This document shows positions 1 to 59,400 of a DNA stretch of 64,000 nucleotides, piece after piece. Under the pieces are notes generated by a model. The model was not told the DNA's origin. It ran no database searches and worked only from the letters and a program-made list of their open reading frames with translations. A program made the position numbers and the translations under genes. How positions within the stretch are numbered: the first letter of the stretch is position 1; each line of letters opens with the position of its first letter. The DNA comes from Anaeramoeba ignava BMAN. Taxonomy: Eukaryota > Protista > Anaeramoebae. The stretch is taken from contig JAPDFW010000062.1 of assembly GCA_028826165.1 (NCBI GenBank), forward strand, positions 1-64,000, written 5' to 3'.

Positions 1-3000
1 AAAATGAATTATTTTCATCAAAAATGAAATTAACTTTCACTAAAAATAAGAGAAATGATTGAATTGGGAATTAAAACAAATCATTTCTTATTTGATTCTG
101 AAATTAAAAATATAATTCAACAAAATGAAAATGAAAATGAAATGAAAATGAAATATATATTTCTCCTTCTTTATATGATAAATTTATTCAAATTATAATT
201 GTTATTATTGGAATATTTTTCAAGAATATTAATCAAAATGAAAATTTAAAATTATTAGTTTCAGATCAAAAAACTATAAATAATATGTGGAAAACTTTTT
301 TTAATAAGTTTGAAATTCCTTGCTTTGAAATTGAAATAGAAAATCAAAATAACAAAATTATTGAACTTGATATTCCTTTTATATCAATAATTTATTCAAT
401 AATTCAACAATATCAAACAATTTCAGAACAAAAAATATCATTTTCTGAATTTATTCAAATTCCTTTTAATGATAAAAGAAATAAGAAAATTTTTAAAAAA
501 GAAAAAATAAATAAGGAAATTATTGGAAAGATATTATTAGATTTTATCAAACTATCTTTTAATCAACAACAACAAAATTTTTTAAATTCATTTAAAATTG
601 AATTTTTGATAAAATGGGTTCAAAATTATAAATCAGAAAATTCAAATTTAGAAGATATTTCTTTTATGGAAATTTACAAAATTTATTTTGAAAAAATTCA
701 TCAAAATTTAATTAATTTAATTGAAATTGATTCATATTTTAAAATTATTTCTGAAATGAAAAACTTTTCAATTTTATCATTTATGAAAAAATTAATTACA
801 AAATTACAAAAAGAACAATTTTTAATCAAAGAAAAAAGTAAAAAAATTGAAGAATTATTTTATTTCTTGATTGAAAATGAAGGAAAAACAGAAAAAAAAC
901 AAAAATCAATTGAATCTCTTTATGATAAATGGAATTTAGAATTATTTAAAAATGAATTTGGAATTGAATTAACAAATTTTAATGAAGAAATTTATCAAAT
1001 AATTGAAGATAAAATGATGATTAACAAAATAACAAGTGAATTGATTAAAGAATTATTTTCTCAAAATGTTAATTGCAATAATATTTTGATTTGCAAAAAA
1101 TCACAAAAAGAAAAATTACAAATTTATCTTACAATTAAACCCAAAAGAAAATCTAAATCTAAATCTAATTCTAATTCTAAATCTAATTCTAAATCAAATT
1201 CTAATTCTAAATCTAAATCTAAAGAAGAAGATGAAAATCAAAACAAATGTCCAATTTGTGAAGAAACTTTCCACAAAAATAATAAACATTTCTCAATTCT
1301 AAATGAAAATTATATTGATCATTATAGAAAAAAAATACGTTCTATTATTTTAAATTTTATAAAATATTTGGCATTTTATGGAGAAATTATTTTCAAAAAA
1401 TTACTTTTCAATAAGAAAATGAAAGGAAAATTTGATTTCACAAATATTCAACAATTTTTCAATTATTTAATTTCCAAAACAAACTATTTATTATCATTAA
1501 ATTCCATTGAAATTTTATATTCAGTTTATATCCCATTATTAACAAATTTAATTTCATTAAACGAAGAAGATGATATTATAAATTTTGTTGAGGAAATGTT
1601 ACAAAAAACAAATTTAAAATTATTGGAAAATCAACAAGAAAATATTATTCTTATCTGTTGTATGAAAATTCTTAATGAAAATGAAAAATTAATCAAATAT
1701 TTTATTCAAAGAAAAGAAGATCAAGAAAAAAGAAATCCAAAAATATTATAGCAATCTTTTTCCAAAGATGGATTTTCACTTAGAAAAATTGCAAAATTTC
1801 TTAAATCAAGAAAAAATTTTATTCAAAAACCACAAAAATTTATCAATAAAATGAAGAATAGTTTAATAAAAAAACAAGATACTTGGTTGAAATTTATTTA
1901 CAATGAAATTCAAAAAACACAAGGAATTAATAATCTCAAAAAATTTATCAAAAATTCTGTTGATGAAAAAATTAAAGAATGCCAATTTTCACAAGAGATT
2001 TTTAATAAATTTCAAGAAGATTTTCTTGATATTAATATTAAAGGAAAGAAAAAAGAGAAAACATTGATACATTATTATGAACAAAACAAAATTGGAAATA
2101 ATTTATTAAATCAATTTACAGAATCTCATATTGGATTTGTTAGTGAACATGGAACAAGTTATTTAGATTCCAAATTATTCCAAAATTTATCCAAAATCGA
2201 AGAAAAAATTGAAGATGAAGAAATTATCAAAATGGCAATTCATTCTATTGAGTTTATTAGTGGATTGAAAATTGAACCATTTCAGTTTTTGTTTTCATCA
2301 GATCTTATATTCGAAGTTGGAGAATCAAAATTAAAACAAGAATTACTTGAAAAATTATATTGGCCTTCAATGGGATCTTATTCATTTTATCCAGATTTTA
2401 TAAATGAAAAAGAAGAAGAAGATAAACTCAATTTATGGTCTTTATGCAAAAAAAATCATTTAAATTTTGTTAAATTTTCACATATTAATTTACAAAATTG
2501 GTGTGGATTTTGTTTATCCAAATTAAAAGTAAATCAAAATCAAAAGAAAATTGATTCCAAATTTTTTGAAAATTGCACTTCTTATTCAGTTTCTAAATTC
2601 CCAAATACAAATCCAGCATTTACATTTAGGAAAATGCATCCAATAACTTTCAGAATTATTCGCTTATTTATTCATCTTTCAGTTATTTCAATTTCAATAA
2701 TATCAGAAAAATTTTCCAAACATTTCATTTCACTTATTAATAATTTTGTTTTTAAACCAGAAACACAAGAAGAATTAATTAATCAATTAAGATCACACAT
2801 TGGGAATGATTTATCCATTTTATCAGGATTATTAAATTTATCAAATTACCAAACAATTCTTTATTATCATGAAACTTTGAATTTGATTTCTCAATATAAG
2901 ATTCCTGAAAAGTTATTCAGAAAAGACAATTTCTTGGATTTAGATTATAGAAACAAATTTGAAGAAGTTTTTTCAAACATTTATAACAAAAATCATTCAA

Positions 3001-5360
3001 CAATTATCGAGAAAGTTATTAAAAACACAAAGAAAATCCAGAAGATATTCAAACAACCAAGTGATAAATTAAATTTATTTGATTTACCAAAAACAAATTT
3101 ATATCATGTTATCAATTTATTTTATCAAAAAGAAGAAAACTCAATAATGTTTCCATTTGTTAAATTTGTTATTGAAAATATCCAAGAATTGAAAATATTG
3201 AATTTATTTGAAGGATTTATCAAATTTGGAAGTTATGTAATGCAAAAATTTAATCAAAAAATAACAAGAAAAGAATCCAGAACAATTCAATTCAAAAATA
3301 CTATTGAAAATGAAAATCAAGATTTATATTTCCAATTTCAAGAATATTGGAATTTATGTTCAAAAGAAACAAAATATTTACAAATTATGAATGAAATTCC
3401 AATCAATGAATTTATAATTGAAATTAATGAAGAATCTTTTATTGATGTTTGTTTGCCAGGAAAAGAAAACTATAATTTAATGATTTCAACATTAATTCAA
3501 CATGGAATTAATCTTAATAACAAATTTATTCAATCAAAATTACTATCTTCAATTTTTAACAAAATTAATCAAGAAAATTATGAAAATCAAGAAATTAATT
3601 ATCCAATTTCTTTAAATGATTTCAATTCAATTCAATTTTTCAATTTTGATATGAAAGAATTTGAGAAAATCAATAATTATAATAATTCATTTAATGAACT
3701 TAAAATTTTTGAAAATTATATTAAAAAAGAAATTGAAAATTTAAAGAAACCATTTATTTTATCTTCCAAAATTAAAAATTTTATTTATTACGATGAAAAA
3801 CCAGAATTAGATATTGAATTTCTTAATAATGAAAATTGGAAACAAGAAGAAGTTGATATTAAAATTTGGAGAAAAATCAAAAATGAATTGGAAAATTATG
3901 GATTATATGGAAAATGTAAAGAATTAATTGAAGTTGTGATTTCAAGTTGCAAAATGATTGAAATGAAAGATTCAAAGAAAATGAAAGATTTAAATGAAAT
4001 GAAAGATTTAAATGAAATGAAAGATTTAAATAAAATGAAAGATTTAAATAAAATGAAAGATTTAAATGAAATGAAAGATTCAAATGAAATGAAAGATTTA
4101 AATGAAATGAAAGATTTAAATAAAATGAAAGATTTAAATAAAATGAAAAATTCAAATAAAATGAAAGATTTAAATGAAATGAAAGATTTAAATGAAATGA
4201 AAGATTTAAATAAAATGAAAGATTTAAATAAAATGAAAGATTTAAATAAAATGAATGATTTAAATGAAATGAAAAATTTAAATGAAATGAAAAATTCAAA
4301 TAAAATGAAAGATTTAAATAAAATGAAAAATTTAAATAAAATGAAAAATTTAAATAAAATGAATGATTTAAATAAAATGAAAGATTTAAATAAAATGAAA
4401 GATTCAAATAAAATGAAAGATTTAAATGAAATGAAAGATTTAAATGAAATGAAAGATTCAAATGAAATGAAAGATTTAAATAAAATGAAATATTTAAATG
4501 AAATGAAAGATTTAAATAAAATGAATGATTTAAATGAAATGAAAGATTTAAATAAAATGAATGATTCAAATAAAATGAAAGATTCAAATGAAATGAAAGA
4601 TTCAAATGAAATGAAAGATTCAAATAAAATGAAAGATTTAAATGAAATGAAAGATTTAAATAAAATGAAAGATTCAAATGAAATGAAAGATTCAAATAAA
4701 ATGAAAGATTTAAATGAAATGAAAGATTCAAATAAAATGAAAGATTCAAATAAAATGAAAGATTCAAACAAAATGAAAAATTCAAATGAAATGAAAGATT
4801 TAAATGAAATGAAAGATTTAAATAAAATGAAAAATTCAAATGAAATGAATGATTTAAATAAAATGAAAGATTTAAATAAAATGAATGAGTTAACAGAATT
4901 ATCAATTATGAAATTTATACAAAATAAAATGGAAATTGATATTTTTGATGATATTGGATTTTCTTCACCAACTTTTAAAGAACAAGCAAAATTAAAACAT
5001 CTTTTATTTTTTCAAAATCATTTAAAATATGATTTAAAAAAAATTATTGAAAAACTTCCAGAAAAATTTAAATCTGAAATGGTTGCTTTCCAAAATAATG
5101 AATTACAAAACTCTTTAAAAAGAATTGATATTGATATTGATAAATTTATTGATTTATTAGAACAATTTATAACTAAAATTGAAGATAAATTTGATCCAAT
5201 TTATCCATTTAGAAAATTATTACTTTTTTCAATTAAAGACAAGAATTCCCAAATTTATAATGAAATTAAGAATAATTTTGATCAAAAAAATTTTATTTTA
5301 TTAGGGAATTTAGTTTCAGTTTATGAATTTACATTAAATTTTTCAAATCAAAAAAATTAA
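1..5360 (+). CDS. RNF213/mysterin-like E3 ubiquitin ligase, C-terminal portion (5' end outside window; one in-frame TAG and apparent frameshifts near 1-150)
   Basis: ORFs 285-1751 and 1851-5360 share a frame and are separated only by TAG at 1749-1751. Motifs: RING-like remnant CPICEE..H, degenerate RZ-finger CKKNH..WCGFC, RKMHPITFRIIRLFIHL and CLPG..LIQHGINLNNKF, which resemble the RNF213 E3 module. Confidence 0.65.
3961..4887 (+). repeat. 18-bp in-frame minisatellite (~51 copies) encoding MKD(L/S)N(E/K)
   Basis: Direct reading of aaatgaaagatttaaat(g/a) units; the frame stays open throughout. Confidence 0.95.
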
Positions 5361-5457: not shown

Positions 5458-6521
5458 ATGGAAATTGATTTTAAAGAACAAGAAAATATTCGTTTTGATT
5501 TTGAAGATTTTGTTGAAGAAGCTGATAAAAAAGCTTTTGAAACACTTGATCGTACTTTAAGAAAAGGGAAAAAATTTATTGTTTGTAAACATTGGCTTCG
5601 TGGACTTTGTAAAAAAGGAGATGAGTGTGAATTTGCTCATATTTATGATCATAGAAAAATGCCTGTTTGTTATTTCTGTGAGTATTAATATATTTAACTT
5701 TAATTTTCAAACAACAATAACAACTAATTTTTTTTTCAATTTAATTTTTATTTAATTTATATTTTTTTTAGGGTAATTTATTCTCTCCTTTTAAACCTTT
5801 CTTTTATAAAACATTTAAATTAAAATTCATTTATAAAATTAAAAATCAAATTAAAATTAAAATTAAAATTAAAATTAAAATTAAAATTAAAATTAAAATT
5901 AAAATTAAAATTAAAATTAAAATTAAAATTAAAATTAAAATTAAAATTAAAATTAAAATTAAAATTAAAATTAAAATTAAAATTCATTTATAAAATTAAA
6001 ATTAAAATTATAAATAAAATTAAAATTATAAAACAAAATCAAAATTAAAATTAAAATTAAAATTAAAATTAAAATTAAAATTAAAATTAAAATTAAAATT
6101 AAAATTAAAATTAAAATTAAAATTAAAATCAAAATTAAAATTAAAATTAAAATTAAAATTAAAAATAAAATTAAATTTAAAATTAAAATTAAAATTAAAA
6201 TTAAAATTAAAATTAAAATTAAAATTAAAATTAAAATTAAAATTAAAATTAAAATTAATATTATAAAATAGGTCAAAATATGGAGAATGTAATAATAGAG
6301 AATGTTTATATCGACATTTAGATCCTGGAAAAAAAGAAAATCAATGTCCTTGGTATTTAAGAGGATTTTGTAAACATGGAGAAAAATGTAGAAGACCTCA
6401 TATTAGAAAAGATCCTTGTCCAAATTATATTGCTGGTTTTTGTCCTCTTGGTCCTGAATGTAAACTTGGTCATCCAAAATTTGAAATTTCACCAAGAATG
6501 GAATCACTTAATCAAAAATAA
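5458..6521 (+). CDS. CPSF4: CPSF30/YTH1 CCCH zinc-finger subunit; exons 5458-5677, 5772 (1 nt), 6272-6521
   Basis: [26 protein letters not shown](W)[18 protein letters not shown] and [23 protein letters not shown] match CPSF4 ZF2-ZF5. GT-AG junctions were checked for phase. Confidence 0.93.
5820..6260 (+). repeat. (TAAAAT)n intronic microsatellite
   Basis: Direct reading; lies in CPSF4 intron 5773-6271. Confidence 0.95.
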
Positions 6522-13139: not shown

Positions 13140-13319
13140 TTCCGTTTTTATTTTTTTTTTTGATTTATAATTTGAAAATGAATGAAAAAATTTTTTAAAA
13201 AAAAGAAAAATGAAAATTTTTTTTTTGCTTTTTTTTTTCTTTTAATAAAAATTACTAATTTTGACATTTTTTTTTAATAACAATCCAAATCCACTTTTTT
13301 TCAAATTAATTCTAAATCA

Positions 13320-14005
13320 AATTCTAAATAATTTTATAAATAATTTTATAATTAATTTTCTAAATAATTTTTTATAATTTTTAATTTTTATAAATAATAA
13401 TTTTATAAATAATTTTATAAATAATTTAATTAATTTTATAAATAATAATTTTATAAATAATTTTATAAATAATTTTATAAATAATTTTATAAATAATTTT
13501 ATAAATAATTTTATAAATAATTTTATAAATAATTTTATAAATAATTTTATAAATAATTTTATAAATAATTTTATATAATTAATTTTATAAATAATTTTAT
13601 AAATAATTTTATAAATAATTTTATAATTAATTTTATAAATAATTTTATAATTAATTTTATAAATAATTTTATAAATAATTTTATATTTAATTTTATAAAT
13701 AATTTTATAAATAATTTTATAAATAATTTTATAAATAATTTTATAAATAAATATTTTAATTTTATAATTAATTTTATAAATAATTTTCTAAATAATAAAT
13801 AATTTTATAAATAATTTTATAAATAATTTTATAAATAATTTTATAAATAATTTTATAAATAATTTTATAAATAATTTTATAAATAATTTTATAAATAATT
13901 TTATAAATAATTTTATAAATAATTTTATAAATAATTTTATAAATAATTTTATAAATAATTTTATAAATAATTTTATAATTAATTTTATAATTAATTTTCT
14001 AAATT
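13320..14005. repeat. 12-bp (AAATAATTTTAT)n intergenic minisatellite
   Basis: Direct reading. The same unit recurs in the TFIIE-beta intron and, inverted, in a RasGAP intron. Confidence 0.95.
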
Positions 14006-14072
14006 AAATTTATTTGTAAAATGTTTTTTAAATGAAAAAAAAAGAATCAAAAAAGAAGAAACAGAAATTTCT

Positions 14073-29442: not shown

Positions 29443-31558
29443 ATGGGAAACGTAAATTCTGCTAAAAAAAAGATTTCAAAAAGAGAAATTAAAGAATATA
29501 AAAGAAGAGTATCTCGTTGTTCTGAATCAATTCTTTTAGTTGATGATAAAGCTAATTTTATTAGAGCAAACAGAGCTGCTATTAAAATGTTCAAAGCAAA
29601 ATCAAAAAAAGATGTTCTTTCAAGAGGCCCAGCTGGTTTAGCTGGTCCTTATCAACCTGCTTTTAAAATGCCTACAAAACAAGCTACTGATTTGATATTG
29701 AGAAATGCTTTTGAGTAAATTCTCTTTTTTCCTCAAATTTTTTTCAACTTTTTTGCTAATTTATTTTTTTTTTCTTTATTAAAAAAAAAGATCCCCTGAT
29801 GGTTTTTATGATTTTGATTTTCTTCATATTGATCTTGATGGGAAAGAATTTTGGTGTCATGTAAATTTATTAATAATCTAAAATAAATATTCAAAAAATA
29901 TTCTAATCAAGATTTAAATAAATATTGAAATAAATATTAAAATAAATATTAAAATAAATATTTAAATAAATATTGAAATAAATATTAAAATAAATATTAA
30001 AATAAATATTTAAATAAATATTAAAATATTGAAAAAAATATTTAAATAAATATCCAAAATAAATATCCAAAATAAATATTAAAATAAATATTAAAATAAA
30101 TATTAAAATAAATATTAAAATAAATATTATTCAAAATATAAATATTATCCAAAATATAAATATTATCCAAAATATAAATATTATTCAAAATATAAATATT
30201 ATCCAAAATATAAATATTATCCAAAATATAAATATTGAAATAAATATTTAAATAAATATTCAAATAAATATTGGAAATAAATATTATCCAAAATAAATAT
30301 TAAAATAAATATTAAAATAAATATTAAAATAAATATTAAAATAAATATTAAAATAAATATTAAAATCAAGATTTAAATAAATAATAAAATAAATATTTAA
30401 ATAAATATTAAAATAAATATTGAAATAAATATTATTCAAAATAAATATTAAAATAAATATTATCCAAAATAAATATTAAAATAAATATTAAAATAAATAT
30501 TCAATAAATATTCAAATAAATATTGAAATAAATATTATCCAAAATAAATATTAAAATAAATATTAAAATATTGAAAAAAATATTGAAAAAAATATTCAAA
30601 TAAATATCCAAAATAAATATCCAAAATAAATATCCAAAATAAATATTAAAATAAATATTAAATTAAATATTATCCAAAATAAATATTCAAAAAATATTCT
30701 AATCAAGATTTAAATATAAATTTTCTTATAAAAAAAAAGGTTTGGTTAACTCCAATTAATTGGGATGGAAAAATGGTTCTTCAAGGATATACAAGACCTG
30801 TTTCTGGACCTGGAGTAACTAAAGCATTTGATTTAGGTGAAGAAGCTTCTTTTTTTGTAAAACCAATTGCTGAAAAAATGTTACAAGCAAAATCAAAAAC
30901 AGAAACAGATTCACAAACTGATTCATTTATTGGAGATGATTTTAAATCAACTACAGAATTTTCAGATACAGAATATTCATCAAAAATTTCTGGACATTCT
31001 CCAAAAAACTCAGAAAATCCAACAAAGGAATCAGAAAGATCACTTAGAGAATCACAAAAATCAAAAAGAGAAGAAAGATCAAATAGAGATCAAGAAAATT
31101 TTCCAAAAGAATCAAAGAAAAAAAATGCCAAATCAAAGAAAGCACAAAGAGATACAACCACAAATTTTTCAAACATAATTCTTTTTGAAGCTGATGAGAA
31201 TACAGTCCAAATACAAAATCGAATTGATAAAATCAAAACAGTTGTTAGATCTCATGATAATCCAGTTCTTGAAAAAACCGTTGTTCAAGAATTAAATGAA
31301 ATCAAGAAAATATTCAATGAATCAACTCAAATTCTCCAAAAACATATTTCTCAATTAGCTGATAAATTACAAAAAGAAAGAAATCAAAATCAAGAAAAAT
31401 ATTCTCAATTAGAATTACATTTACAAAAAAGTCTTTCAAAAACACAAGAAGCTCAAAATGGATATGAAACTTTATTCAACAAAATGAAAGTTATTGAAGA
31501 ACTCTTTGATGATAAATTGGCACAAATTTTACATCCTCAATTCGAAAAACAAAATTAA
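29443..31558 (+). CDS. PAS-domain + coiled-coil protein, paralog A; exons 29443-29714, 29791-29860, 30740-31558
   Basis: ESILLVDDKANFIRANRAAIKMF..FDFLHIDLDGKEFWCHVWLTPI..MVLQGYTRPV is a PAS-like pattern. N-terminus MGNVNSAKKK; C-terminal heptads. Confidence 0.82.
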
Positions 31559-32016: not shown

Positions 32017-35000
32017 ATGGGAAACGTCAATTCAGCTAAAAAAAAGATACTCAAAAAACAAACAAAAGAATATAAAAAGAAAATTGCACAATTTAGCGAA
32101 GCAATAACACATTCAGATGAGAAAGGCAATTTTTTATATGTAAACAAAGCAGCCGTTAAAATGTTTAAAGCAAAATCCAAAAATGAAATTCTCTCTAGAA
32201 ATGCAGGAAGTTTAGCTGCTGCTTATCAACCTGCTTTTAAAATGCCTACTTATCAAGCAATAGGAGTCATTGGGAAAAATATTTTTGAGTAATTTGTTCT
32301 TTTTCTTTTAAAAAAAAAACGATCAAAAAAAAATCAAAATAAAATTTAAATTTAAATTAAAAATCAAATTAATATTAAAAATATTAAAAGATCCCCTGAT
32401 GGTTTTTATGATTTTGATTTTCTTCATATTGATCTTGATGGGAAAGAATTTTGGTGTCATGTAAATTTATTAATAAATATTAAAATAATTAATCAAATAA
32501 ATAATCAAATAAATATTTCCAAAAAAATTATTCCACAAAAATTATTCCAAAAAATTCTTTAAAACTATTAATTAAAAAAATATTCAAATCAAGATTTAAA
32601 TATAAATATTATCCAAAATAAATATTTAAAATAAATATTTCAAAATAAATATTTAAATAAATATTGAAATAAATATTGAAATAAATATTATCCAAAATAA
32701 ATATTATCCAAAATAAATATTCCAAAATAAATATTCCAAAATAAATATTATCCAAAATAAATATTATCCAAAATAAATATTATCCAAAAATAAATATTCC
32801 AAAATAAATATTAAAATAAAATTAAAAAATATTGAAATAAATATTATCCAATATAAATATTCCAAAAATAAATATTAAAATAAATATTCCGACCAATATT
32901 ATATAAAATAAATATTATCCAATATAAATATTAAAATAAAAAATAAAAATAAATATAAAAAAAATAAATATAAATATCCAAAATAAATATTCCAAAAATA
33001 AATATTTAAAAAATAAATATTAAAATAAATATTTAAATAAATATTAAAAATAAATATTCCAAAATAAATATTATCCAAAATAAATATTATCCAAAATAAA
33101 TATTGAAATAAATATAAATATTATCCAAAATAAATATTATCCAAAATAAATATTATCCAAAATAAATATTATCCAAAAAATAAATATTCAAAAAAATATA
33201 AAATATCCAAAATAAATATTATCCAAAAATAAATATTATCCAAAATAAATATTATCCAAAATAAATATTATCCAAAATAAATATTAAAATAAATATCTAT
33301 CCAAAATAAATATTAAAATAAAAATATCCAAAATAAATATTATCCAAAATAAAAAATAAATAAATATTATCCAAAATAAATATTATCCAAAATAAATATT
33401 ATCCAAAATAAATATATCCAAAATAAATATTCCAAAATAAATATTGTATCCAAAATAAATATTAAAATAAATATTCCAAAATAAATATTAAAATAAATAT
33501 CAAAATAAATATTTAAAAAATAAATATTATCCAAAATAAATATTATCCAAAATAAATATTCCAAAAATAAATATTCAAAATAAAATAATATCAAAATAAA
33601 TATTTCAAAATAAATATTGAAATATAAATATTATATCCAAAATAAATATTCCAAAAATAAATAAATATTCAAAATAAATATTGAAATAAATATTATCCAA
33701 AATAAATATTGAAATAAATATTATCCAAAAAAATAAAATATTAAAATAAATATTATCCAAAATAAATATTGAAATAAATATCCAAAATAAATATTATCCA
33801 AAATAAATTTTGACCTGGGGAACTCAAATATTATCCAAAATGGTTAAATATTATCCAATAAAATAAATTTTATCCAAAATAAATATTATCCAAAAATAAA
33901 TATTATCCAAAAAATAAATATTCAAAAATATTTCCAAAATATAAATATTATCCAAAAAATAAATATTATCAAAATAAATTATCCAAAATAAATATTTCGT
34001 CGGAAATAAATATTAAAATATTAAAATAAAAATATTAAAATAAATATTCCAAAATAAATATATCCAAAATAAATATTATCCAAAATAAATATTCCAAAAT
34101 AAATATTATTAAAAAATAAATATTATCCAAAATAAATATTATTCCAAAATAAATATTATTCAAAAATAAATATTCAAAATAAATATTATCTAAAAAATAT
34201 TAAAATAAATATTAAAAATATCCGAAGTTATTCAAAAATATAAATATTATCCAAAAATAAATATTAAAATAAATATTTTAAAATAAATATTTAAATAAAT
34301 ATTCCAAAATAAATATTCCAAAATAAATATTCCAAAATAAAATATCCAAAATAAAATATCCAAAATAAATATTCAAAAAATATTCTAAAATAAATTTTAT
34401 CCAAAATAAATATTATCCAAAATAAATATATCCAAAATAAATATTAAAAATAAAATATTAAAATAAATATTTCAATATAAATATTAAAATAAATATTATT
34501 CAATATAAATATTATCCAAAATAAATATTTCAAAAATAAATATTATCCAAAAAATAAAATATTCCAAAATAAATATTCAATATAAATATTATCCAAAATA
34601 AATATTATCCAAAATAAATATTATCCAAAATAAATATTATCCAAAATAAATATTCAATATAAATATTATCCAAAATAAATATTTCCAATATAAATATTAA
34701 AATAAATATTATTCAAAAAATATTCAAAAATATCCTAATAAAAATTTTCTTATAAAAAAAAAGGTTTGGTTAACTCCAATTAATTTGGGAGGAAAAATGG
34801 TTCTTCAAGGATATACAAGACCTGTTTCTGAACCTGGAATAACTAAAACATTAGATTTAAGTCAAGAAGCAGCTTTTTTTGTAAAACCAGTTAGTGAAAA
34901 ACAAAGTAAATCAAATTCCAAATCTTCCAATTCAAAAACAGAAACAGATTCACAAACTGATTCATTTGTTGGAGATGGTTTAAAATCAACTACAGAATTA

Positions 35001-36217: not shown

Positions 36218-38278
36218 ATGGGAGTTTCAAATTCTGCGAAAAAGAAAATTTCCAAAAGAGAAATTAAAGAATATAAAATGAGAGTAGAAAAATGTTCTGA
36301 ATCAATTCTTTTGGTTGATAATAAGGCTAATTTTATTGAAGCAAACAAAGCAGCTGTTAAAATGTTTAAAGCAAAATCAAAAAAAGATGTTCTTGAAAAA
36401 GGTCCAAATGGTTTAGCTGGTCCTTATCAACCTGCTTTTAAAATGCCTACAATGCAAGCTTCTGCTTTGGTTCTGAAAAATGCTTTTGAGTAAAATTCTC
36501 TTCTTTCCACAATTTTTTTTTATAAAACAAATTAAAACAAATTAAATTTAAATCAAATCAAAATCAAATTAAATTAAATCAAATCAAATCAAAATCAAAT
36601 TAAATCAAATCTCAAATCAAATTAAATTAAATCAAAATCAAATCAAATCAAATTAAATTAAATCAAATTAAATCAAATCAAATAAATATCAAATCAAATC
36701 AAATCAAATTAAATTCAAATTTAAATCAAATTAAATTAAATAAATCAAATCAAATTAAATCAAAATTAAATTAAATTAAATTAAATATCAAATTAAATCA
36801 AATTAAATCAAATATTAAATTAAATTAAATTAAAAAAATTAAATTAAAATCAAATCAAATCAAATCAAAATCAAATCAAATTAAATCAAATCAAATCAAA
36901 TTAAATCAAATCAAATCAAAATCAAAAATCAAATAAAAAATAAAATCAAATCAAATCAAATCAAATCAAATCAAATTAAATTAAAATTAAATCAAATTAA
37001 ATCAAATCAAAAATTATCAAATTAAATCAAATTCAAAATCAAATCAAATCAAATCAAATCAAATCAAATCAAATCATATCAAATCAAAATCAAATTAAAT
37101 TAAATTAAATCAAACCAAATTAAATCAAATCAAATTAAATCAAATCAAATTAAATATTAAATTTAAATCAAATCAAATTAAATCAAATCAAATATCAAAT
37201 CAAATTAAATTAAATCAAATCAAATTAAATCAAATTAAATCAAATCAAATTCAAATCAAATCAAATCAAATTAAATCAAATCAAATTAAAATCAAATCAA
37301 ATCAAATCAAATTAAATTAAATTAAATTAAATTAAATTAAATTAAATTAAATTAAATTAAATCAAATTAAATCAAATTAAATCAAATCAAATTAAATATC
37401 AAATCAACAAAAAGATCTCCTGATGGTTTTTATGATTTTGATTTTCTTCACGTTGATTGTGAGAATAAAGAATTTTGGTGTCATGTAAATTTATAAACAT
37501 TTCCAAAAATAAATATTTAAAAAATAAAATTGTCTTAAAAAAGGTTTGGGTTACTCCAATTAATTGGGGAGGTGAATTGGTTCTTCAAGGATACGCAAGA
37601 CCTGTTTCTGAACCTGGAATAACTAAAACATTTGATTTAAGTGAAGAAGCAGCTTTTTTTATAAAACCAGTTGCTGAAAAAATGTTACAAGCAAAATCAA
37701 CATCCAATTCAAAAACAGAAACAGATTCACAAACTGATTCATTTATTGGAGATGATTTTAAAACAACTACAGAATTATCAGATACAGAAAATCCTGTAAA
37801 TTTCTCAGAAGTAACATCACAAACAGATCAAGAAAGAAAACCAAAAACATCAAGCAAAAAACAAAAAGAAACAATAAATTCAAGTTTTCCCAATGTGATC
37901 CTTTTTGATAATGATGAAGATGAAATTCAATTAGAAAATCGAATTGATAAAATTAAATCAGTTGTTAGATCTCATGATAATCCAGTTCTTGAAAAAACCG
38001 TTGTTCAAGAATTAAATGAAATTAAGAAAATATTCAGTAATTCAACTCAAAATCTCGAAAAAAAAATTTCTCGTTTAGTTGATAAATTACAAAAAGAAAG
38101 AAATCAACACCAACAAAAATATTCTCAATTAGAATCACATTTACAAAAAAATCTTTCAAAATCACAAGAAGCTCAAAATGAATATGAAGTCTTATTTTCC
38201 AAAATGAAAAGTATTCAAGAAATTTTTGATGATAAAGTGAATCAAATTTTAAATCCAAAAATCGAAAAACAAAATTAA
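36218..38278 (+). CDS. PAS-domain + coiled-coil protein, paralog C; exons 36218-36489, 37415-37484, 37544-38278
   Basis: Same exon structure and homology as paralogs A and B. Confidence 0.82.
36525..37410. repeat. Intronic (AAATC/AAATT)n pentamer repeat
   Basis: Direct reading. Confidence 0.95.
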
Positions 38279-38816: not shown

Positions 38817-41105
38817 ATGGGAATTTGTAATTCAAAAAGAAGACGACTTTCTTTATCAAGTTTTGAATTAATTTTATTAATTGGAGAAGGAAGATATGGA
38901 AGAATTTATGTCGCAAAAGAAAAACGAAGTCAAAAAAAATTTGCGATAAAAATAATAAATAAAAGTTTTCTTTTGGATCAAAAAGTGCCAAAACTTGCAT
39001 TTCAAGAAAGAGATTCACTTTGTTCAATTTCAAGTCCTTTTGTTGTAAAATTGTATCATTGTTTTCAAGATGAAGAAAGTTTGTATTTTGTTATGGATTG
39101 GATTAATGGTTTTGATTTATTTGAGCATCTTAATGGTTTTAATACTTTTCCTGAGTATCTTGTTCGTTTTTATGCTGCTGAATTGATTCTTGCTTTACAA
39201 CATATTCATAAAGCTGGATTTGTTCATGCGTAATTAAATCAATTCAATTTAATTTAATATTCAATATTCAATATTCAATATTCAATATTCAATTCAATAT
39301 TCAATTTAATATTTAATTCAATTTAAGATCAAATTTAAGATCAAATTTAAGATCAATTCAATTCAATTAAAAATCATATTCAATATTCAATTCAAATTCA
39401 ATTTAATTTAATTCAATTCAATATTCAATTCAATATTCAATTCAATATTCAATTTAATATTTAATTCAATTTAATTTAATTTAATTTAATTTAATATTCA
39501 ATTTTAATATTCAATTCAATTCAATTCAATATTCAATTTAATTTAATTTAATTTAATTTAATATTCAATATTCAATATTCAATATTCAATTTTCAATTCA
39601 ATATTCAATTCAATTTAATTCAATTTAATTCAATATTCAATTGAATATTCAATATTCAATATTCAATATTCAATATTCAATATTCAATATTCAATATTCA
39701 ATATTCAATATTCAATATTCAATATTCAATATTCAATATTCAAATTCAATATTCAATTTAATATTTAATTCAATTTAAGATCAAATTTAAGATCAAATTT
39801 AAGATCAATTCAATTCAATTAAAAATCATATTCAATATTCAATTTAATTCAATTCAAAGATCAATTTTAAGATCAATTCAATTTAATTTAATTTAATTTA
39901 ATTTAATTCAATTTAATTCAATTCAATATTCAATATTTAATTCAATTTAATTTAATTTAATTTAATATTCAAAAATCATATTCAATATTCAATTCAAATT
40001 CAATTTAATTTAATTTAATATTCAATATTCAAATTCAATTCAAATTTAATTTAATTTAATATTCAATATTCAATATTCAATTCAAATTCAATTTAATTTA
40101 ATTTAATATTCAATATTCAATATTCAATATTCAATATTCAATTCAAATTCAAAAAAAAATCAAAAATTAAAAATCAAAAATTAAAAAAATTTAAAATCAA
40201 TTCAAAAATAGAGACTTAAAACCTGAAAATATTTTAATTGATCCAAATGGACACATTGCATTAATTGATTTTGGATCTTCAATATCAAAAGAAATAATTG
40301 AATCAAAAAAAGCACTTCCTGTATTAGGGTCATATCAATATATGGGTAAATCTCTTCAAATTAAAAAAGAAAAAAAAAACTTTTTTTTTCCTCATAAATT
40401 GAAAATTTTCTTTTAATAGCTCCAGAAGCTCTTAATATAGAAAAAATAGGGTTTGAAATTGATTTTTGGAGTTTAGGAGCAATTATATATGAAATGGTTC
40501 ATGGAACAGTATTTATTAATAATTAAAAAAAAATTTACACTTGTTATATTTATAATAATTTTTTGTTTATTTTTTGATTTTGTTTATTTTTAGCCACCTC
40601 ATTATGCAGAAACACAACCTCAAACAATTCAAAATATATTAACTGAAGAATTAGAACTTAATCAAGAAATTTCAGAAGAAATCAAATCTTTATTAAAAGG
40701 AGTATTTTTTTTTCTTCATTTTTTTTGTAATTAATTTATATCTAAATTCATTATTTTTTTAGTTATTGCAAAAACAACCAGAAAAAAGATTAGGTTTTAA
40801 TGGAATTGATGAAATTAAAAATCATCCATTTTTTGAAGGAATTGATTGGGATAAAGTTTTAAAAAAAGAATATGAACCATTTTTTATTCCTGGAGTAAAA
40901 ATTAAAATTAAAATTCATTTATAAATTAAAATTAAAATTAAAATTAAAATTAATTTTTATTTTTAAAAAAAAAAAGCCAAAACATCTTATTAATGAACAT
41001 AAAAATCAACTTGAACAACTTGTTCTCCTTTCTTTAATTGATCAAAAAGATCAAAAATTATTCTCACATTTTGATTTTAATCCATTTTTGGGTGATGTTA
41101 TTTGA
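38817..41105 (+). CDS. AGC-group Ser/Thr kinase; exons 38817-39229, 40212-40345, 40420-40508, 40594-40701, 40763-40894, 40977-41105
   Basis: [48 protein letters not shown] and C-tail FSHFDF. Confidence 0.92.
39240..40200. repeat. Intronic (CAATATT/CAATT/TAATT)n repeat with an internal ~90-bp duplication (39302-39392 and 39754-39843)
   Basis: Direct reading. Confidence 0.9.
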
Positions 41106-56461: not shown

Positions 56462-59400
56462 TTATTTTCTTTTAGTTGTTCTCCCTCTTCTTGGTTTTTT
56501 AGTTTGATTTCCAAAATTTTCTTCAAAATCTGGAACAACTTCAATTAAAGAAACTCCTAAAGATTTAATTTCTTCATTTGTTCTTTGTTCTTTTTCTGAT
56601 AAATCAAACCACAATGATTTAAATTTTGGATCAATATTGAGTTCGAATTCTTCATTTATTCGAAATAACGTGTATTTTTTATTATCATCATTTTGAATTA
56701 GAATAATTTTCTTTTGTGATCCTAATTCCTTTTTTATTAAAAGTTTTATAAATAATTTTATAAATAATTTTATAAATAATTTTATAAATAATTTTATAAA
56801 TAATTTTATATTTAATTTTATATATAATTTTATAAATAATTTTATAAATAATTTTATATATAATTTTATATTTAATTTTATATTTAATTTTATAAATAAT
56901 TTTATAATTAATTTTATAATTAATTTTATAATTAATTTTATATTTAATTTTATATTTAATTTTATAAATAATTTTATAATTAATTTTATAAATAATTTTA
57001 TAATTAATTTTATAATTAATTTTATAAATAATTTTATAAATATTTTTATTAATAATATTATAATTAATTTTATAAATAATTTTATAAATAATTTTATAAA
57101 TAAATTTATTAATAATTTTATAAATAATTTAATAAATAATTTTATAAATAATTTTATAAATAATTTTATAAATAATTTTATAAATAATTTTATAATTAAT
57201 TTTATAATTAATTTTATAATTAATTTTATAAATAATTTTATAAATAATTTTATATATAATTTTATAATTAATTTTATAAATAATTTTATAATTAATTTTA
57301 TAAATAATTTTATAATTAATTTTATAATTAATTTTATAAATAATTTTATTAATAATTTTATAAATAATTTTATATTTAATTTTATAATTAATTTTATAAT
57401 TAATTTTATAATTAATATTATAAATAATTTTATAAATAATTTTATAAATAATTTTATATATAATTTAATAAATAAATTTATTAATAATTTTATAAATAAT
57501 TTAATAAATAAATTTATTAATAATTTTATAAATAATTTTATAAATAATTTTATAAATAATTTTATAAATAATTTTATAAATAATTTTATATTTAATTTTA
57601 TATTTAATTTTATAAATAATTTTATAAATAATTTTATAAATAATTTTATAAATAATTTTATAATTAATTTTTATAATTAATTTTATAATTAATTTTATAA
57701 TTAATTTTATAAATAATTTTATAATTAATTTTATAAATAATTTTATATTTAATTTTATAATTAATTTTATAATTAATTTTATAAATAATTTTATAATTAA
57801 TTTTATAAATAATTTAATAATAATTTTATAATTAATTTTATAAATAATTTTATAAATAATTTTATAAATAATTTTATAAATAATTTTATAAATAATTTTA
57901 TTAATAATTTTATAAATAATATTATAATTAATTTTATAATTAATTTTATAATTAATTTTATTAATAATTTTATTAATAATATTATAATTAATTTTATAAT
58001 TAATTTTATAAATAATATTATAATTAATTTTATAAATAATTTTATAAATAATATTATAATTAATTTTATAATTAATTTTATAAATAATTTTATAAATAAT
58101 TTTATTAATAATATTATAATTAATTTTATAAATAATTTTATAATTAATTTTATAATTAATTTTATAAATAATTTTATAAATAATTTTATAAATAATTTTA
58201 TAAATAATTTTATAAATAATTTTATAAATAATTTTATAAATAATTTTATAAATAATTTAATAAATAATTTTATAAATAATTTTATAATTAATTTTATAAA
58301 TAATTTTATAAATAATTTTATATTTAATTTAATAAATAATTTTATTAATAATATTATAAATAATTTAATAAATAATTTAATAAATAATTTTATATATAAT
58401 TTTATAAATAATTTTATATTTAATTTAATTAATAATTTTATTAATAATTTAATAAATAATTTTATATTTAATTTTATAATTAATTTTATAAATAATTTTA
58501 TAAATAATTTTATAAATAATTTTATAAATAATTTTATAAATAATTTTATAAATAATTTTATAAATAATTTTATAATTAATTTTATTAATAATTTTATAAT
58601 TAATTTTATAATTAATTTTATTAATAATTTTATAATTAATTTTATAAATAATTTTATAATTAATTTTATAATTAATTTTATAATTAATTTTATTAATAAT
58701 TTTATAAATAATTTTATATTTAATTTTATAAATAATTTTATAAATAATTTTATATTTTATTTTATAAATAATTTTATATTTAATTTTATAAATAATTTTA
58801 TAAATAATTTTATAAATAATTTTATAAATAATTTTATAAATAATTTTATATTTTATTTTATAATTAATTTTATAAATAATTTTATAAATAATTTTATAAA
58901 TAATTTTATAAATAATTTTATAAATAATTTTATATTTAATTTTATATTTAATTTTATAAATAATTTTATATTTAATTTTATAAATAATTTTATAAATAAT
59001 TTTATATTTAATTTTATATTTAATTTTATAATTAATTTTATATTTAATTTTATAAATAATTTTATAAATAATTTTATAATTAATTTTATAAATAATTTTA
59101 TAAATAATTTTATAAATAATTTTATAATAGTCTACTTTCACATCCATCAAAATATCAGGATAAGCATCTTCTAAATCAGAAAAAGCTAAACCATTTTCTG
59201 AATGATTTACCAAATTCAAAATATCATCTTTATTATGAACTTGGTGTTTAGATTTATATAAAAACATATTATCTTTAATTTCAATTTTAGGATTTTTTTT
59301 GAGAGTTTGAAACAATTCATTTTTTGCTGAATGACCATGTTCAAAAATATCAACACCAGTTTGACTATGAATCTCTCCTGCAGAAAATGGTCTTCTTTCT

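Follow-up and report, generated by a model that had tools for sequence, protein, structure and literature searches.

Exons of a single nucleotide have been documented in a plant and in a fungus. In Arabidopsis thaliana APC11, the exon is A333, for which proof came from sequenced cDNA, resequenced genomic DNA, and minigenes carrying base substitutions (Guo and Liu 2015; PMC4674806). In Fusarium, CYP621A has a one-nucleotide exon that 20 species share and that SRA reads confirm (Nelson and Syed 2026; PMC12940212). A preliminary description of the DNA analyzed here proposed another exon of this kind, the base G5772 in the CPSF4/YTH1 gene of Anaeramoeba ignava BMAN. It cited the APC11 precedent, which the literature confirms and which CYP621A now accompanies. 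The CPSF4 product is a zinc-finger subunit and acts as the reader of the poly(A) signal. Our analysis suggests that G5772 is probably a one-base exon of A. ignava CPSF4 that restores a TGG codon, and we consider this the best reading of the locus.

The A. ignava locus resembles APC11 in several respects. In both genes, one base lies between a canonical AG and a canonical GT inside an annotated single intron, the gene is essential and single-copy, and the public model is rescued by a shift of the upstream donor, by 10 nt in APC11 and by 4 nt in CPSF4. In each, 44 nt separate the exon, or candidate exon, from a branch-like A on its upstream side, and relatives without the intron are available in the form of rice APC11 paralogues and the A. 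flamelloides CPSF4 gene. The two cases differ in the base (A in APC11, G in CPSF4) and in the lineage, a plant as opposed to a metamonad protist. Unlike APC11, CPSF4 also has an in-frame single-intron alternative, and its one-base exon is a candidate drawn from genomic sequence.

The likeness to CYP621A concerns the codon and the way in which the exon was recognized. The single base occupies the central position of a conserved codon (Gly in CYP621A, Trp in CPSF4), it was deduced from phase incompatibility with an intronless relative serving as a length marker, and the overall intron is conspicuously longer than the genome median. The Fusarium exon is backed by 20 species and by reads, whereas the A. 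ignava candidate comes from the genomic sequence of one strain. An intronless orthologue and a mis-annotated nearby donor support both published cases, which thereby serve as precedents for CPSF4.

Recursive splice sites, or ratchet points, are found in long Drosophila and vertebrate introns, where juxtaposed 3' and 5' splice sites lead to intron removal in two ordered steps. The juxtaposition of splice sites in CPSF4 would likewise force two-step removal. Ratchet points leave zero bases (AG directly abutting GT) and serve very long introns, whereas the CPSF4 site would retain one coding base within an interval of 594 nt. G5772 intervenes between the AG and the GT, and the site, though it can function in a similar way, is not a ratchet point. 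Our literature search found no work linking Anaeramoeba with microexons.

Identity of the locus

The window, that is, the whole stretch of 64,000 nucleotides analyzed here, comprises bases 1-64000 of contig C63, and the genome searched holds 42,843,398 bases in 147 contigs. When the last exon was compared with the whole 42.8-Mb genome, it gave one match, and the locus is the single CPSF4/YTH1 orthologue of A. ignava BMAN. Since CPSF4 is single-copy in this genome, the gene must give a working protein.

Coding exon 1 (5458-5677, + strand) starts with the ATG at 5458 and encodes the N-terminal region, zinc finger 2 (ZF2), and the first Cys-Tyr-Phe of zinc finger 3 (ZF3). Its translation begins M-E-I-D-F and ends M-P-V-C-Y-F, T5677 is the first base of the following codon, and the unspliced frame meets a stop at 5686. 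In the last coding exon (6272-6521, + strand), G6272 would close the split codon and is followed by S-K-Y-G-E-C. The block translated from 6273 to 6518 contains the remainder of ZF3 and two more CCCH fingers, ZF4 and ZF5, before the TAA at 6519-6521.

Pfam detected CCCH zinc fingers in both coding blocks (zf-CCCH and zf_CCCH_4 in exon 1). In alignments, residues 37-73 of exon 1 correspond to residues 62-98 of human CPSF4 and residues 40-73 to residues 64-97 of yeast Yth1, while residues 1-73 of the last exon correspond to human 100-172 and residues 1-74 to yeast 99-174. PDB chains were matched collinearly (CPSF4, E = 1e-22 and 6e-31; Yth1, E = 5e-15 and 7e-15). The tandem CCCH fingers are thus collinear with ZF2-ZF5 of human CPSF4 and yeast Yth1, which places the protein in the CPSF4/CPSF30/Yth1 family. 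Every named top match is CPSF4/Yth1, and together with the single locus this establishes orthology, in agreement with the gene identity given in the preliminary description. The deposited protein, KAJ5076198.1 (P0001; 157 aa), carries the name [quoted passage not shown].

A search of metagenomes yielded a best match of 59% identity and no closer relatives, and no transcript-derived copies of the protein were found among the protein collections searched. The exon 1 reading frame was not found on any other contig on record, and the locus occurs once in the assembly.

Zinc finger 1 is absent from both Anaeramoeba CPSF4 proteins, in which a short acidic N-terminus (5458-5570 in A. ignava) directly precedes ZF2, as is also the case in microsporidian Nematocida orthologues. 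The gene upstream (1851-5360) is an intronless frame of 1169 codons whose region at about 4000-4900 encodes dozens of M-K-D-L-N-E/K hexapeptide repeats. Elsewhere in the window, 13264-14015 and 56744-59130 contain almost no G or C; the GC fraction of 13501-14000 is 0.004, and a 2.4-kb run free of G and C extends over about 56.7-59.1 kb.

Layout of the splice junctions

By direct reading and with a script, we located all sequence features listed in the preliminary description at the positions it gave. The reading frame of exon 1 (ATG 5458 ... TGT TAT TTC T) leaves T5677 in codon phase 1 immediately before GTGAGT at 5678-5683. At the other end of the interval, the final acceptor AG (6270-6271) is followed by G6272 and then by in-frame TCA AAA TAT GGA GAA TGT. 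Inside the interval, a run of eight Ts (5762-5769) directly precedes an AG, such that T5769, A5770, and G5771 are followed by G5772 and then by G5773, T5774, and AATT. One base therefore separates a canonical AG (5770-5771) from a canonical GT (5773-5774).

The proposed intron 1 (5678-5771, + strand) is 94 nt long, runs from GTGAGT to a T-tract and TAG, and is free of G from position +7 to its AG. It contains a branch-point-like ACTAAT (5723-5728, + strand) 44 nt upstream of G5771. The proposed intron 2 (5773-6271, + strand) is 499 nt long, runs from GTAATT to AAAATAG, and is free of G from position +2 to its AG. Between them, the proposed one-base exon G5772 (+ strand) would be the central base of a Trp codon divided into T, G, and G, and it is flanked by the sole internal AG and GT. 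A scripted count found just three Gs (5771, 5772, and 5773) among the 586 bases from 5684 to 6269, so that exactly one internal AG and one internal GT exist there, which makes the route through G5772 the sole canonical one with two introns.

Only two canonical GT-AG paths retain both the frame and all conserved residues. The first removes introns 5678-5771 and 5773-6271 and joins T5677, G5772, and G6272 into TGG; it gives C-Y-F-W-S-K-Y in a 156-residue protein, with the mRNA junction TATTTCTGGTCAAAA. The second is the public gene model, which uses an alternative donor, GTATTA (5682-5687, + strand), and removes one intron from 5682 to 6271. It reads TGT GAG and gives C-Y-F-C-E-S-K-Y, with Cys-Glu in place of Trp and the mRNA junction TTCTGTGAGTCA. 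The earlier statement that a single intron is out of frame is thus correct for the donor at 5678 and incorrect for the GT at 5682, from which the single intron is in frame, as in the public model.

The introns do not show U12-type features, as the U12 5' motif (G/A)TATCCTTT, defined in the supplement of PMC11550330, compares with the donors GTGAGTAT and GTAATTTA.

Most of intron 2 is occupied by a hexamer microsatellite, (ATTAAA)n (5813-6263, + strand; 74.7 copies by Tandem Repeats Finder). These roughly 75 sense-strand copies spell AUUAAA, a variant of the poly(A) signal, within the gene for its reader. The same repeat fills other introns in either orientation, for example at 40895-40976 (+ strand) of contig C63 and at 31284-31684 of contig C65, and the array in intron 2 is probably just a common microsatellite of this genome.

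Comparison with orthologues at the junction

The alignments described above were used to examine the two sides of the junction. Exon 1, read up to its terminal Phe (5676), ends at residue 98 of human CPSF4 and 97 of yeast Yth1, and the block that begins with Ser (6273) starts at residues 100 and 99, respectively. Exactly one residue is therefore missing between the two blocks.

The sister species A. flamelloides has an uninterrupted 570-nt orthologue (P0151; KAJ6245906.1, 189 aa) in which M-P-V-C-Y-F-W-S-K-Y is encoded, its Cys-to-Lys portion by TGC TAC TTT TGG TCC AAA. Because this intronless gene carries TGG at the corresponding position, the product of splicing through G5772 agrees with the sister protein at every residue spanning the junction. 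In an alignment of 15 sequences, an extra column at the junction is present in the public A. ignava model only.

We then counted the first spacing of ZF3 in 224 orthologues, namely those retrieved sequences whose ZF2 and ZF3 were recognizable by pattern. The spacing is C-x8-C in 219 and x7 in 4, and x9 occurs in the public A. ignava model only. At the position of the predicted Trp, the 219 orthologues with x8 have Tyr (111), Phe (103), Trp (4), or Asn (1), so that the residue is aromatic in 218 of 219. The expectation in the preliminary description that TGG would provide the C-x8-C spacing and an aromatic residue is well supported by these counts and by the A. flamelloides TGG. G5772 is needed for both the frame and the length of the orthologues, as the in-frame path from the donor at 5682, which leaves it out, breaks the spacing.

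These data bear directly on the possibility that the public model is right, with a single 590-nt intron from GTATTA (5682) to the AG at 6271, a Cys-Glu pair, a C-x9-C finger, and a merely coincidental presence of GTGAGT and AG-G-GT. Given the prevalence of C-x8-C and the near-invariant aromatic residue, it would require a one-residue insertion together with the loss of the aromatic residue in an RNA-binding finger, making A. ignava the sole C-x9-C among 224 where its sister has Trp. The public model is nonetheless canonical (GT-AG) and in frame, and KAJ5076198.1 was deposited from a pipeline with RNA-seq available. BMAN poly(A)+ RNA-seq (BioProject PRJNA634776) was mapped with HISAT2 (PMC11550330). 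In our judgement, an aligner of this type is unable to place a one-base exon and would lay such reads across a 5678-6271 intron with one inserted base, leaving the gene finder to choose the in-frame donor at 5682. The deposited model therefore does not discriminate between the two paths. Overall, we regard the public model as unlikely to be correct. The two forms could also be made side by side, both being in frame.

Splice signals in the A. ignava genome

To place the junctions in their genomic context, we assembled a strict sample of 34 G-free intron-like units bridging open frames in 260 kb; being G-free by selection, the sample is silent on G-containing introns. Its median length is 94.5 nt (n=34), as compared with 94 nt for intron 1, and the published A. 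ignava introns have a median of 102 nt and a mode of 76 (PMC11550330 supplement). Among acceptor pentamers (n=34), TTTAG occurs 13 times, AAAAG 11 times, and AATAG 3 times; the internal acceptor is TTTAG and the final acceptor AATAG. The typical length of intron 1 and its use of the commonest acceptor pentamer both count in favor of the one-base exon.

The donor hexamers of the sample (n=34) include GTAAAT (11), GTAAAA (6), GTAATT (5), and GTATTT (3). The intron 2 donor, GTAATT, is among the three commonest and is typical for this genome. The donor of the public model, GTATTA, also belongs to a class in use, as GTAT-type donors are found in 6 of the 34 credible introns, which speaks for that model. 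GTG donors are uncommon (2 of 34, the donor at 5678 included), and GTRAGT is rare, with GTGAGT occurring 13 times per 519 kb when both strands are counted. The earlier designation of GTGAGT as the best donor is apt by the general eukaryotic consensus, but given its rarity here the argument does not carry over to this genome.

The ACTAAT motif, proposed earlier as a branch site, is present, but it is weak as branch evidence: just 2 of the 34 introns, intron 1 being one of them, have a CTAAY at a distance of 10-55 nt from their 3' end. We dropped this motif as an argument on the grounds that it is not general.

Three paralogues in the window share one intron position, with intron lengths of 59 nt (37485-37543), 879 nt (29861-30739), and 2303 nt (32461-34763), and their exon borders were fixed by the mutual similarity of the three copies. 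Internal AGs are skipped at +51, +510, and +847 in the 879-nt intron and at +133 and +1767 in the 2303-nt intron. A rule that the first AG at least 50 nt past the donor serves as acceptor is thus not absolute, and we dropped it as an argument. Since long paralogous introns skip internal AGs, the AG at 5771 could be passed over as well, a further point on the side of the public model. The long paralogue introns are filled with local repeats, and several of the skipped AGs sit in a repeated TCTAATCAAG unit.

Chance expectation and genome-wide scan

To estimate the chance of encountering the internal site, we took 260 kb of genomic sequence and used the regions in which A+T makes up at least 90%. 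Per 586 nt, the expected number is 0.015 for AGGGT and 0.13 for any AG-N-GT. The public model needs three coincidences at once: a GT exactly 4 nt upstream of the donor that it uses, an AGGGT in an otherwise G-free interval, and the spelling of the very residue found in the sister species. All three are expected if G5772 is an exon and are accidents under the public model.

The preliminary description had suggested scanning the genome for further AG-N-GT sites within introns of incompatible frame. The scan showed no enrichment. T5-AG-N-GTAAT occurs 13 times genome-wide, versus 32 for the reversed-pattern control, and WTAG-N-GTAA occurs 592 times versus 3937, or 182 versus 855 in its AT-flanked version. 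In the last two comparisons, acceptor-N-donor strings are four to seven times rarer than the reversed strings, perhaps because AT-rich DNA avoids stray splice signals. For the three-base version the count is 3318, versus 5850 for the reversed control, and the matches fall partly in regular arrays; on the minus strand of G000:C1:409310-413131, dozens of ATAG-NNN-GTAA matches are spaced about 71-94 nt apart.

We inspected 32 other AG-N-GT sites, and none had two intron-like flanks with coding sequence beyond. They fall in ordinary exons, at exon ends, on the strand opposite a gene, or in repeats. The only other tandem pair of G-free intron-like units in the 260 kb lies 5 nt apart. With AG-N-GT below control and no similar architecture among the inspected sites, a class of one-base exons in this genome was rejected. 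The AG-G-GT site of CPSF4 stands nearly alone, with no class to lean on.

Alternatives that yield the same mRNA

The intronless TGG of A. flamelloides and the unique spacing of the public model support G5772 as an exon, but the mRNA alone, one of the checks put forward earlier, cannot prove it. The predicted TGG mRNA is identical for a one-base exon, for a G missing from the assembly, and for shifted non-canonical intron borders.

In the second of these cases, the true acceptor would be AG followed by GG TCA, one ordinary intron (5678-6271) would give TGG, and AG-G-GT would be coincidental. Nanopore R9 data underlie the assembly (ABruijn, Racon, Nanopolish), which was polished with Pilon just twice (PMC11550330), the site lies 8 nt from a 450-nt microsatellite, and an added G would yield the same Trp. 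Against this, short reads should have polished a GG correctly in the last exon, whose sequence is unique, and long open frames nearby are intact, including the 1169 codons just upstream, which points to a low indel rate. An assembly error would also still require the AGGGT coincidence estimated above. We judge such an error to be quite improbable.

A single intron with non-canonical borders, either GT...TA (5678-6270) or TG...AG (5679-6271), would likewise give the TGG mRNA, with the same mature sequence as the one-base exon. Only 55 of 32,108 annotated BMAN introns have non-canonical borders (33 AT-AC, 20 GC-AG, 1 GT-AA, and 1 TA-AG), with no GT-TA or TG-AG among them (PMC11550330 supplement), and such borders would leave the internal AG-G-GT unexplained. 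This explanation is, in our view, exceedingly improbable.

Proposed splicing of CPSF4

With G5772 as an exon, the Trp codon of ZF3 would be split by two spliceosomal GT-AG introns lying one base apart. The internal AG at 5771 and the GT at 5773 would both be used, and removal of both introns would produce TGG and a protein with the family's C-x8-C spacing and aromatic residue. Pairing of U1 at the second donor (about 5770-5778) would overlap the 3' splice site of intron 1, and for this reason the introns are predicted to be removed one after the other. The order could be either, in a manner similar to recursive splicing that retains one base. Skipping of G5772 from the donor at 5678 would be expected to cause a frameshift and an early stop, and retention of intron 2 would place a TAA after TGG.

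The A. ignava lineage may have gained these introns, or A. flamelloides may have lost them. Introns 1 and 2 show no similarity to each other, and genome matches to intron 1 are of low complexity only. Origin by tandem duplication or from a mobile family was rejected, as the two introns are unlike and no repeated family was found.

The preliminary description had also suggested a frame-sensitive regulatory switch at this junction, for which we found no support. A bolder reading is that the A. ignava spliceosome has no practical lower limit on exon size and constitutively splices a single coding base by two ordered reactions. At its furthest, this reading adds autoregulation of the poly(A)-signal reader through the fragile junction and the AUUAAA hexamers of intron 2, where a surplus of CPSF would cause cleavage inside the intron or upset the order of splicing, giving frameshifted or truncated transcripts. 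We consider this bolder reading very improbable.

Significance

The CPSF4 site probably extends a known but very rare type of exon to another lineage and to an essential gene. If the reading is true, G5772 would, as far as our literature search shows, bring the number of nuclear one-base exons to three and be the first from a protist. It would also be the first outside plants and fungi, and it would lie in the single gene for the poly(A)-signal reader.

Such a gene structure is rare, and public annotation would have missed it here. The Cys-Glu of KAJ5076198.1 probably stands in place of a Trp in the real protein, at a site within an RNA-binding finger. Pipelines that combine an aligner with a gene finder would silently "repair" genes of this type by means of a shifted donor, and intronless orthologues can expose such cases.

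If G5772 is indeed an exon, spliceosomes far from those of plants and fungi can join a single nucleotide, and the A. ignava gene would add to the indications that a very AT-rich genome tolerates extremely small exons.
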